A stretch of 64,000 nucleotides of DNA from the sequence record LR756501.1; one strand, 5' to 3'. The translations under genes were made by a program, and so were the position numbers. Shown here one piece after another: positions 8,507-63,928 of this stretch (position 1 is the stretch's first letter; each line of letters starts with the position of its first letter). Under the pieces are notes generated by a model that saw only the letters and a program-made list of their open reading frames with translations, searched no databases and was not told the origin of the DNA.

Positions 8507-8844
8507 AAGTCCATTCTTTCTATTTGATCAATAGGTACATTTTTCACTACCCAGTGATTACCTCTTGCTCTTCTCACGTTTCTATATCTGGTATCTATTT
8601 TCAATACTATTGGATGATGAATGGCTGCTTCTTCTGGTGTTTCTGTTAAATATATTTCACCATTTAAACCATCTCTCATTATACTATCTATCGCTTCAAT
8701 TTCAACAGCGTGATATAAAAAATCTGGAACACCGTTACCATCAACGTCATTCTCATTATCTGCTGGATCTGGTTCGTCTTTAACTAAAAGTTTTTTCAGC
8801 CAANNNNNNNNNNNNNNNNNNNNNGTACAAGATTTAATTCTCAT
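8503..8844 (-). CDS. Putative ART/Tpt1-fold small protein (spans assembly gap)
   Basis: LYHAV...GL...IYLT pattern; N run at 8804-8824. Confidence 0.45.
   Translation of the reverse strand: MRIKSCXXXXXXXXWLKKLLVKDEPDPADNENDVDGNGVPDFLYHAVEIEAIDSIMRDGLNGEIYLTETPEEAAIHHPIVLKIDTRYRNVRRARGNHWVVKNVPIDQIERMDL
8804..8824. other. Assembly gap
   Basis: 21 N bases. Confidence 1.
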
Positions 8845-42753: not shown

Positions 42754-42758
42754 GTTTG

Positions 42759-42897
42759 TTGGAAGGGGATGAATCGAACATCCGGTCACGGCTTATGATG
42801 CTTGGTTTGTGTTGCTGTACGTAATTTTTATCCGTTTAAAGTCGAATATCAAATTACGGTTTTTGTTTACGTCGTGTTACCACTACACTACCTTCCA
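42759..42897 (-). ncRNA. tRNA-like element with ~65-70-nt insertion in the anticodon arm
   Basis: Acceptor tggaagg/ccttcca, intact D and T arms; insert holds a cgtaattt/aaattacg hairpin and TACAGCAA. Confidence 0.65.
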
Positions 42898-42914
42898 ATT
42901 TCTATTTCAATACG

Positions 42915-42923
42915 TCAAAGAAC
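42915..42923 (-). promoter_or_regulatory. boxA-like element
   Basis: GTTCTTTGAcgTATTGAAATA. Confidence 0.65.
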
Positions 42924-42940
42924 TTAATCTTTATTATTTG

Positions 42941-43020: not shown

Positions 43021-43052
43021 ACAAAAAACCCAATCATTTCTGATTGGGTTCC
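43021..43052 (-). terminator. Attenuator terminator before the Glu/Met/Ile/Gln array
   Basis: aacccaatca-GAAA-tgattgggtt + U tract. Confidence 0.88.
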
Positions 43053-43073
43053 TCGAATATCTTATTAACATTC

Positions 43074-43154
43074 TTAATATGATATAGTCCCTCCAATCAG
43101 GTTTTGAATCTGTTGCATCTGTTCTTGTATCATATTAATTATTCGAAAGTTCAT
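43074..43154 (-). CDS. Leader peptide MNFRIINMIQEQMQQIQNLIGGTISY
   Basis: 27-codon uORF; contains CTGATTGG (43093-43100), complementary to the terminator 5' arm. Confidence 0.8.
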   Translation of the reverse strand: MNFRIINMIQEQMQQIQNLIGGTISY

Positions 43155-43196
43155 AATATTTATTTTTTACTATTTCTATATATTAGACTAAAAAAG

Positions 43197-43379
43197 TCAT
43201 TTTTTTCTATTTTCAGCAGGATAACCTTTTTCTGTTATCGCCTTCATCAATTCATTTAATGTTACTCCAAACCCTTTATCCTTTAAAACCTCTTGTACTA
43301 CTTCTGTTGGTGCTTCTGATGTAAAACTAACATTCTGTAAGTTAGTGTAATCCATATTCGTAAGATAGTATGCAGTCAT
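43197..43379 (-). CDS. Small hypothetical protein
   Basis: 60-aa ORF; TAATTTTG promoter at 43407-43414. Confidence 0.65.
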   Translation of the reverse strand: MTAYYLTNMDYTNLQNVSFTSEAPTEVVQEVLKDKGFGVTLNELMKAITEKGYPAENRKK

Positions 43380-55169: not shown

Positions 55170-55242
55170 TCGTGATGATTGGATTCGAACCAACGGTCGC
55201 CTGTTTATCCGACAGGTGCTCTAACCTCTGAGCTACACCACA
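55170..55242 (-). tRNA. tRNA-Ile(GAT), G33 variant
   Basis: cctgt-CGGATAA-acagg. Confidence 0.75.
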
Positions 55243-56473: not shown

Positions 56474-56541
56474 TGCCGCCGGAAGGAATTGAACCTTCTC
56501 GCTAAGCTTTTACAGAGCTGTCGTCTCCCTGGATCGTCGGC
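56474..56541 (-). tRNA. Atypical short tRNA with GTA (Tyr) anticodon, no long variable arm, reduced D arm
   Basis: agct-CTGTAAA-agct; gaagg-TTCAATT-ccttc; 68 nt. Confidence 0.55.
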
Positions 56542-56596
56542 TTATAAATTTCTACGCACTATTAGATGCTGCCTATGAAATTTTAACAGTCTGCTG

Positions 56597-57376: not shown

Positions 57377-57445
57377 TCATCCAATCAGCATTTTCAGCTT
57401 ATCATTAATACAATAATCATTATATTTGCGAACCATGTTTTTCAT
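57377..57445 (-). CDS. Leader peptide MKNMVRKYNDYCINDKLKMLIG
   Basis: 23-codon uORF ending CTG ATT GGA TGA; CTGATTGG (57381-57388) complementary to the terminator 5' arm. Confidence 0.85.
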   Translation of the reverse strand: MKNMVRKYNDYCINDKLKMLIG

Positions 57446-57549
57446 ATCTTTGTTTCCTTATATATTTTATAAAAATAGTCTGTTTTTTCCATTTTCAATT
57501 ACACCGCGAACTTAATGAAAGTTCGCGGTATAATCAAATTATTTCAACT

Positions 57550-63790: not shown

Positions 63791-63928
63791 AGATTGCCTT
63801 TTTAAAATAAGGTTGGATTCGAACCAACATTCTCCATCTTTGCTTTTTCTCTGCGTCCAATGGTGTGTTACCCTTACACTACTCTCCCAATTTTTGGCGG
63901 GAGCCGTTTTGTTTGCTGTAAGCAATCT
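63791..63928 (-). ncRNA. UUACAGCAA stem element enclosing a degenerate tRNA body
   Basis: agattgc/gcaatct stem; D arm gtgt/acac; T arm gttgg-TTCGAAT-ccaac. Confidence 0.55.

Follow-up and report, generated by a model that had tools for sequence, protein, structure and literature searches.

Introduction

The leader-peptide transcription attenuators trpL, hisL, leuL, pheL, thrL and ilvL control amino-acid biosynthetic operons in Proteobacteria, and the thr and ilv leaders are multivalent, with codons for two or three amino acids. The pheM leader attenuator of the Escherichia coli pheST operon senses charged cognate transfer RNA (tRNA) and controls an aminoacyl-tRNA synthetase. The T-box works with no translation: its specifier codon and T-box sequence make direct contact with uncharged tRNA. 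The subject of this report is a 64,000-nucleotide (nt) stretch of sequence record LR756501.1, called the window throughout, in which a short leader open reading frame (ORF) and a terminator precede an array of phage tRNA genes. This leader unit, four others in the same phage genome and 24 from relatives are highly likely to belong to one family: transcription attenuators of the ribosome-mediated (leader-peptide) kind, which gate the tRNA arrays of huge phages.

Like trpL-type leaders, the phage units have a short ORF in which regulatory codons cluster, an intrinsic terminator ahead of the genes under control and an alternative helix that takes up the 5' arm of the terminator and would do so depending on ribosome position. 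They differ in their targets, which are tRNA genes and one L7/L12 gene rather than biosynthetic enzymes, and in their viral setting. The range of a single phage leader would extend to seven amino acids, and that of all the leaders in a genome, taken jointly, to all 20. The phage units also lack a supported segment 1, a feature of the trp archetype and not of the class as a whole, and have no sequence or Rfam relationship to the trpL-type leaders. With pheM they would share leader-peptide attenuation of a translation-apparatus gene through sensing of charged cognate tRNA, the pheM case differing in its synthetase target, its single amino acid and its bacterial chromosome. With the T-box they would share a choice between terminator and antiterminator made by the state of a specific tRNA. 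The T-box targets are genes for aminoacylation and amino-acid supply, and the phage units, unlike the T-box, have an ORF with a frame-specific signal and no T-box match.

The role of phage tRNAs has long been debated: the proposals are that they compensate for codon usage, that they serve as replacements once the host is shut off, or that they let the phage evade anticodon nucleases. The accessible parts of two papers (PMC10264068, PMC11464382) treat the function and sequence of phage tRNAs in terms of codon compensation or counter-defence, and there pose the same question as the phage units, namely why and when phages need tRNAs of their own. A full-text literature search returned no description of leader-peptide control of tRNA genes, an absence that holds for the literature searched and not everywhere. 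The original prediction, made from the letters of the window, had likewise named no described translation-coupled attenuator of phage tRNA arrays, and within that literature none was found.

Architecture of the leader units

The window is identical to LR756501.1, the genome of an uncultured phage of 735,411 bp with an AT-rich base composition (32% G+C). This phage has the largest genome in the study of Al-Shayeb et al. (2020), belongs to the Mahaphage clade and has a predicted host in the Bacteroidetes; the words 'attenuator' and 'leader' are absent from the text of that paper. Searches of GenBank phages with blastn and tblastn found no relatives beyond the same genome deposited twice. There are 59 tRNAs called in the genome, 54 of which lie in five minus-strand arrays that jointly span all 20 amino acids. 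Each array is headed by one unit, and the order of parts is promoter-like motif, leader ORF, antiterminator/terminator and tRNA array. The leaders and arrays are as follows.

Unit 1: leader MNFRIINMIQEQMQQIQNLIGGTISY; array with Met, Gln, Ile(TAT) and Glu tRNAs
Unit 2: leader MKNMVRKYNDYCINDKLKMLIG; array with Ile(GAT), Cys, Asp, Asn and Tyr tRNAs
Unit 3: leader MNNILHINLLNSLCLLGIKLIG, with all six Leu codons; array with five Leu tRNAs
Unit 4: leader MLQTSKHSKHFSSSSKWFTTFGVETDLLCVS; array with Trp, His, Phe, Lys and Ser tRNAs
Unit 5: leader MLFNSNISVKFTPAPAVAFRRGTGTGTGTCVPAGCGFEGMNG; array with Arg, Thr, Val, Ala, Gly and Pro tRNAs

The features of unit 1 and of the array behind it, all on the minus strand, are listed next with their window positions.

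43177..43207, minus strand: promoter-like motif, GAAAAAA-NN-GAC-W-TTTT ... AATATATA, 22 nt upstream of the leader ATG
43154-43074, minus strand: leader ORF, 26 codons plus TAA, encoding MNFRIINMIQEQMQQIQNLIGGTISY
43133-43104, minus strand: control block, codons 8-17, ATG ATA CAA GAA CAG ATG CAA CAG ATT CAA
43100-43093, minus strand: segment 2 (5' strand of the antiterminator), CTGATTGG, in codons 19-21
43051-43018, minus strand: intrinsic terminator, with 5' arm 43051-43041 (segment 3), GAAA loop 43040-43037, 3' arm 43036-43026 (segment 4) and T-run
43011-42940, minus strand: tRNA-Glu(TTC)-like gene, directly after the terminator, called by ARAGORN at a relaxed threshold only
42897-42758, minus strand: CAT-anticodon tRNA with a 68-nt insertion, called by ARAGORN with introns allowed
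42753-42681, minus strand: tRNA-Met(CAT), ARAGORN default
42672-42599, minus strand: tRNA-Gln(TTG), ARAGORN default
42594-42523, minus strand: tRNA-Gln(CTG), ARAGORN default
41364-38785, minus strand: rest of array 1, with ORFs interspersed
41364-41292, minus strand: Gln(TTG) of array 1
40593-40250, minus strand: three Met(CAT) and one Ile(TAT) of array 1
39064-38815, minus strand: two Glu(TTC) and one Glu(CTC) of array 1
38813-38785, minus strand: terminator-like hairpin, directly after the last tRNA-Glu of array 1

Nine of the ten control codons have a reader tRNA in array 1 (Met CAT, Ile TAT, Gln TTG/CTG and Glu TTC); the reader of the remaining codon, ATT, is Ile(GAT), which is located in array 2. 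Segment 2 (CTGATTGG) is exactly complementary to CCAATCAG at 43047-43040, 45 nt downstream, and the duplex has a predicted energy of -12.9 kcal/mol, compared with -17.8 kcal/mol for the terminator hairpin. The original prediction had described this locus as an upstream ORF with a ten-codon block, a following segment 2 and its complement in the 5' arm of a GAAA-loop terminator, and all of these parts were found in place. It had further named a tRNA-Glu(TTC), a 'CAT-like element' and cognate tRNAs for both Gln codons. Both Gln tRNAs are called by ARAGORN at default settings, and the CAT-like element proved to be the CAT-anticodon tRNA with the 68-nt insertion. The tRNA-Glu(TTC) assignment stands in part: it has the relaxed-threshold call, and the orthologues in loci L143 and L156 are called tRNA-Glu(ttc) by ARAGORN at default settings, whereas the gene at 43011-42940 itself receives no default call and no call from Rfam.

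Orthologues of unit 1 were found in nine further distinct sequences from IMG/VR and JGI metagenomes. All keep the same frame, with near-invariant control codons, and the only changes in the control block are Gln CAA/CAG swaps. Segment 2 is near-invariant in the unit 1 orthologues and invariant in alignment A1, and the linker to the terminator varies freely, with indels.

The terminator hairpin of the unit 1 type has only three copies in the 735-kb genome, and every copy stands after a leader (units 1, 2 and 3). The ORFs before these three shared hairpins end in Leu-Ile-Gly codons bearing (C/T)TGATTGG. The terminators of the other two units are unrelated in sequence, and the complementary segment of the ORF is changed to match, as TTCGGGGTT versus AACCCCGAA in one case and GGGTGTGGG versus CCCACACCC in the other.

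Leader and array composition

For the comparison with relatives, IMG/VR was scanned with the promoter-like motif, which gave at least 120 loci. There were 26 non-identical motif regions with a tRNA array 200-840 nt downstream, and 24 of the 26 added a new distinct leader unit. The statistics therefore use 29 distinct units, 5 from LR756501.1 and 24 from IMG/VR contigs. In each unit the longest ATG ORF that ends ahead of the terminator was taken as the leader, whatever its composition, and an amino acid was counted for an array if a tRNA for it lies within the first 3 kb. These units share descent and are thus incompletely independent, and it is the rearranged arrays of relatives that carry the argument.

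An ATG ORF of 20-44 codons is present in all 29 units and also before array A of genome G004. Every array amino-acid instance was found in its own leader (109 of 109, across 29 of 29 units). Amino acids of the own array make up a fraction of 0.426 of the leader residues. Permuting the arrays lowers this fraction to 0.195 +/- 0.029, and the observed value was not reached in any of 20,000 permutations. In the +1 and +2 frames the coverage drops to 74% and 66% and the own-array fraction to 0.19 and 0.15, which places the leader-array signal in the reading frame.

Rearranged arrays show the same correspondence at single loci. The leader at L136, on a 676-kb contig of genome G004, has four Gln codons before Thr, Gly, Ala, Gln, Pro and Arg tRNAs. 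Array A of the same genome contains Leu, Asp, Asn, Met, Glu, Tyr and Cys tRNAs, and its leader has 16 successive residues drawn solely from {L,C,N,Y,M,E,D}. At L073, Tyr, Ser, His and Leu occur together in both array and leader, and at L077 and L045 Ile is added to leader and array alike. The original prediction had named as its refutation a leader composition that does not track array content in relatives; tracking is what the five paralogous and 24 further units show, including cases in which amino acids have moved between arrays.

The frame dependence bears on one rival account, in which the two-structure RNA switch is real and is read otherwise: either the logic is reversed, a stall near segment 2 favoring termination, or a tRNA or protein binds the leader RNA independently of translation as in T-box or TRAP systems. 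The leaders are of the Bacteroidetes type without a Shine-Dalgarno sequence, so that translation is not readable from sequence, and this account also gains from a segment 1 that is unsupported, from last control codons that lie near segment 2 and from a stop codon that is often well beyond it. The account is opposed by the specificity of the leader-array match to the ORF frame, by the ATG start and in-frame stop before the terminator that are kept in all units, by the synonymous nature of control-block variation in the unit 1 orthologues and by the lack of an Rfam match to the T-box or another family. Reversed logic would amount to positive feedback on tRNA shortage, which has no evident use. 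Taken as a whole, this account is quite improbable.

RNA structure and specificity of the architecture

All 29 units have a hairpin and T-run separating the leader from the first tRNA, with hairpin energies of -12 to -20 kcal/mol, and in every unit a segment complementary to the 5' arm of the terminator lies inside the 3' part of the ORF. Among 14 representatives of differing terminators, the cognate duplex of segments 2 and 3 (the 2:3 helix) has a mean energy of -16.2 kcal/mol, compared with -8.9 +/- 2.6 kcal/mol for non-cognate pairs. The cognate duplex is the best of its row in 11 of the 14, and the observed energy sum was reached by 0 of 200,000 permutations. Segment 2 co-varies with the 5' arm of the terminator across about 12-14 unrelated terminator sequences. 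Together with the frame-specific signal, this co-variation upholds the proposal of the original prediction that the leader codons match the downstream tRNAs as part of an attenuator.

Folding of both conformers, which had been suggested as a check, gave the expected exchange in all five LR756501.1 units. The 2:3 helix is the minimum free energy (MFE) structure when the 3' arm is omitted, and the full transcript folds into the terminator. A scan blind to composition, for a terminator with a complementary segment in an ORF of 12-70 codons, run on both strands of two genomes (1.4 Mb), returned four hits, all of them tRNA-array leaders.

These comparative data refute a chance ORF beside an ordinary terminator of the upstream gene, which has almost no probability left. 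Its appeal lies in an AT-rich genome where short ORFs are common, and in the pairing of segments 2 and 3 in the single copy of unit 1, which against shuffles gives just p about 0.017. The architecture is, however, shared by five paralogues and at least 24 relatives, the permutations of composition (0 of 20,000) and of pairing (0 of 200,000) never reach the observed values, and the blind scan finds tRNA arrays only. A plain rho-independent terminator of the upstream gene was rejected as well: hairpin and T-run are present, yet they come with an alternative helix that co-varies and an ORF that matches the array.

Rfam searches at E up to 1 gave only tRNA matches overlapping the units, with no leader family (Trp, His, Leu, Thr and similar), T-box or other cis-regulatory family. 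A sub-threshold match to the Rfam S15 leader runs on the opposite strand, across the unit 3 terminator.

Units 2 to 5

Unit 2 lies wholly inside the window, and its features are as follows.

57458..57490, minus strand: promoter-like motif
57377..57445, minus strand: leader ORF, MKNMVRKYNDYCINDKLKMLIG plus TGA
57424-57401, minus strand: control block, TAT AAT GAT TAT TGT ATT AAT GAT
57388-57381, minus strand: segment 2, CTGATTGG, abutting the stop codon
57351-57316, minus strand: terminator, with 5' arm 57351-57341, and 3' arm and T-run 57336-57316; -13.3 kcal/mol
57270-56899, minus strand: phage-encoded homologue of ribosomal protein L7/L12 (Pfam PF00542 and PF16320), after the terminator and before the tRNAs
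56671-54793, minus strand: array 2 tRNAs, Ile, Cys, Ile, Asp, three Asn, Ile, Tyr and two Asp

All eight control codons of unit 2 have a reader tRNA in array 2. The terminator has one internal A.A mismatch, which the antiterminator is without. From its position behind the terminator, the L7/L12 homologue would come under unit 2 control as well; locus L123, the orthologue of this region, has an identical gene order with the L7/L12 homologue included. Units 1 and 2 split the Ile codons, ATA occurring in unit 1 with Ile(TAT) in its array and ATT in unit 2 with Ile(GAT) in its array.

Unit 3 crosses the end of the window, and its terminator is the only part besides the array that lies inside.

Record 195157-195089, just past the window end: unit 3 leader, MNNILHINLLNSLCLLGIKLIG
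63990-63956, minus strand: unit 3 terminator
63784-63240, minus strand: unit 3 array, five Leu tRNAs

Two tRNA-like elements that ARAGORN does not call are scored by Rfam, one at 1337-1421 of L004 (window 63804-63888, minus strand; 38.5 bits) and one at 646-713 of L003 (window 56475-56542, minus strand; 28.3 bits). More tRNA-like genes are present in the arrays than appear among the default calls, and the Ser codons of the unit 4 leader predict additional, uncalled Ser tRNAs.

Proposed mechanism

Computation directly shows the parts of the units and their conservation, the frame-specific match of each leader to its array, the co-variation between segments 2 and 3 and how specific the architecture is. 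The mechanism proposed here adds that the leader ORF is translated, which frame specificity and synonymous-only variation indirectly suggest, and makes three assumptions: that stalling leads to read-through rather than the reverse; that the trigger is scarcity, non-charging or cleavage of host tRNAs (codon-usage mismatch, host shut-off or anticodon nucleases); and that the attenuator is the main route of array transcription.

In this scheme, the promoter-like motif would drive a short transcript that opens with the leader ORF of 20-44 codons, the middle of which is dense with codons of the downstream tRNAs and the 3' part of which includes segment 2. An unimpeded ribosome would cover segment 2, or would sit at the stop codon between segments 2 and 3. 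With the ribosome so placed while segments 3 and 4 are made, the terminator would form and the array would stay off. When a charged cognate tRNA is short, the ribosome would stall on a control codon and leave segment 2 naked. The naked segment 2 would then capture the emerging segment 3, terminator formation would be prevented and RNA polymerase would enter the array. Charged product tRNAs would lift the stall, so that the capacity to decode its own codons would feed back negatively on each array. The phage thus probably makes the array tRNAs only when decoding of their codons falters.

On a wider view, it is probable that huge phages of the Bacteroidetes type carry a complete, modular sensor of translation demand, in which a few leaders split all 20 amino acids among them, ribosome-stall antitermination gates each array (and one ribosomal protein gene) and tRNAs are supplied by feedback only for failing codons.

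If this is true, these would be the first tRNA genes under leader-peptide attenuation, and the genomes would give direct evidence of phage tRNAs as a response to insufficient decoding capacity in infection. A cis-element that reads the decoding of the codons it serves would mean that the phage treats tRNAs as an on-demand supply, which makes the question of their purpose testable. For leader-peptide attenuation, tRNA genes would be a new class of target, viruses a new setting and the host phylum a new one, in which this mechanism has been little studied. For annotation, the leaders could delimit tRNA operons and predict odd or uncalled tRNA-like elements in each array. For engineering, the family could be a source of small natural sensors for charged-tRNA supply, with at least one for each amino acid.

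Several observations weigh against this mechanism. Array C of genome G004 (IMGVR_UViG_3300035208_009193, 647053-641904) has no recognisable adjacent leader. The unit 4 leader contains the Ser codons TCT, TCA, TCC and AGT without a called cognate tRNA, Ser(CGA) being the sole Ser call. A trp-type anti-antiterminator (pairing of segments 1 and 2) or pause hairpin is unsupported in the 29 units; the segment 1:2 pairing looked plausible in single folds and was dropped when it proved no better than shuffles across the set (mean z +0.2). Without a supported segment 1 the design has three segments, and its default in the absence of translation would be read-through. The distance from the last array-matching codons to segment 2 has a median of 9 nt and in many units is only 3-9 nt, so short that a ribosome stalled there would occupy segment 2 instead of freeing it. 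From segment 2 to the stop codon the median distance is 15 nt and the maximum 34 nt, a loose geometry in which the block of 2:3 pairing by an unimpeded ribosome would be partly a matter of timing and sterics rather than of direct occlusion. A second motif between the terminator and the tRNAs of several units could be a promoter independent of the attenuator. Finally, in two lake metatranscriptome runs, contigs of a close relative cover the leader, terminator and downstream elements of units 1 and 3. These contigs have no ends or strand, and read-through RNA is inseparable in them from carried-over DNA; they favor neither side.

Motifs around the terminators

The GAAAAAA-NN-GAC-W-TTTT and AATATATA motif lies upstream of all five leaders and of a few ordinary ORFs in the 735-kb genome. 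Its presence before ordinary ORFs is the behavior of a promoter class, and the motif presumably acts as a promoter. A Sigma-70 promoter scan was uninformative, since the number of sites equaled the shuffle expectation.

The second motif, GTTCTTTGA-N4-TTGAAATA, occurs at the following places.

42923-42903, minus strand: unit 1 region
56013-55993, minus strand: further copy
56907-56887, minus strand: further copy
63953-63933, minus strand: further copy
Record 367350: further copy

On the gene strand of the 735-kb genome the strict pattern is found five times, each time within a tRNA region, and three of the five copies lie about 7-9 nt before the 5' end of a tRNA or tRNA-like element. Its two opposite-strand matches are both distant from tRNAs. 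In units 3 and 5, as in L045 and L110, the motif follows the terminator immediately, and it is also found after terminators in L143 and L156. It is possibly an internal promoter or a processing signal.

This second motif is the basis of another rival account, in which the leader units are self-contained small genes, the arrays are transcribed from the second motif and the peptide or its translation has another purpose, for example as a trans-acting peptide or RNA. The confinement of the gene-strand motif to tRNA regions, right after the terminator (units 3, 5, L045 and L110) or before tRNA 5' ends, speaks for it, as does the strength of the terminators. Trans-acting roles of attenuator RNAs and peptides are known in Sinorhizobium and offer a precedent, within the accessible parts of the two papers concerned (PMC6614838, PMC7298713). 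The account nevertheless leaves unexplained both the co-variation of segment 2 with the terminator 5' arm and the 2:3 helix of the truncated transcript. In unit 1, moreover, the Glu-like tRNA gene separates the terminator from the second motif, and about 14 nt only is too little for a promoter; in unit 4 the second motif is merely partial. This account is quite unlikely. An extra internal promoter and a leader-peptide attenuator would in any case be compatible with each other.

Other features of the arrays

The hairpin at 38813-38785 is likely to mark the end of the array 1 transcription unit. The ATA and GAA codons of the leader suggest that the genes at 41364-38785 share one transcription unit with unit 1.

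Codons 7-26 of the unit 1 leader, with segment 2 and the stop codon among them, are enclosed by an 11-bp A/U-rich inverted repeat (window 43138-43128 and 43084-43074, minus strand), which belongs to the MFE fold. The repeat is partly kept in orthologues with 26-codon leaders and is absent from shorter ones.

The 68-nt insertion of the CAT-anticodon tRNA at 42897-42758 lies in the anticodon arm and contains a hairpin followed by TACAGCAAC. Hairpin elements bearing TYACAGCAA recur between tRNAs, for example upstream of window positions 55242 and 63784 and at record 363100-363880. A wastewater relative is without the region 42758-42935.

A pair of tRNAs with a CTA anticodon, of the amber suppressor type, lies outside the window on the plus strand (record 690585-690738) and has no leader unit. 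Suppressor-type tRNAs (CTA or TTA) also occur in genomes G001, G002 and G004, and TAG ends just 1 of the 29 leaders. This hints at stop-codon recoding in the phage group of LR756501.1.

A masked run of 21 N at window 8804-8824 has no bearing on the leader units. Array 1 contains two protein ORFs (window 42464-41775 and 41271-40741, minus strand), which encode a 229-amino-acid Cys/His-rich protein with a weak C-terminal helix-turn-helix match and a 176-amino-acid protein with an N-terminal hydrophobic stretch and a Fib_succ_major domain. Array C of G004 comprises Trp, Ile, Val, His, Ser, Phe and Lys tRNAs, then Ile, Arg and Ser, and the ORFs upstream of it include an HNH-like one. HNH-like insertions break arrays in relatives too.
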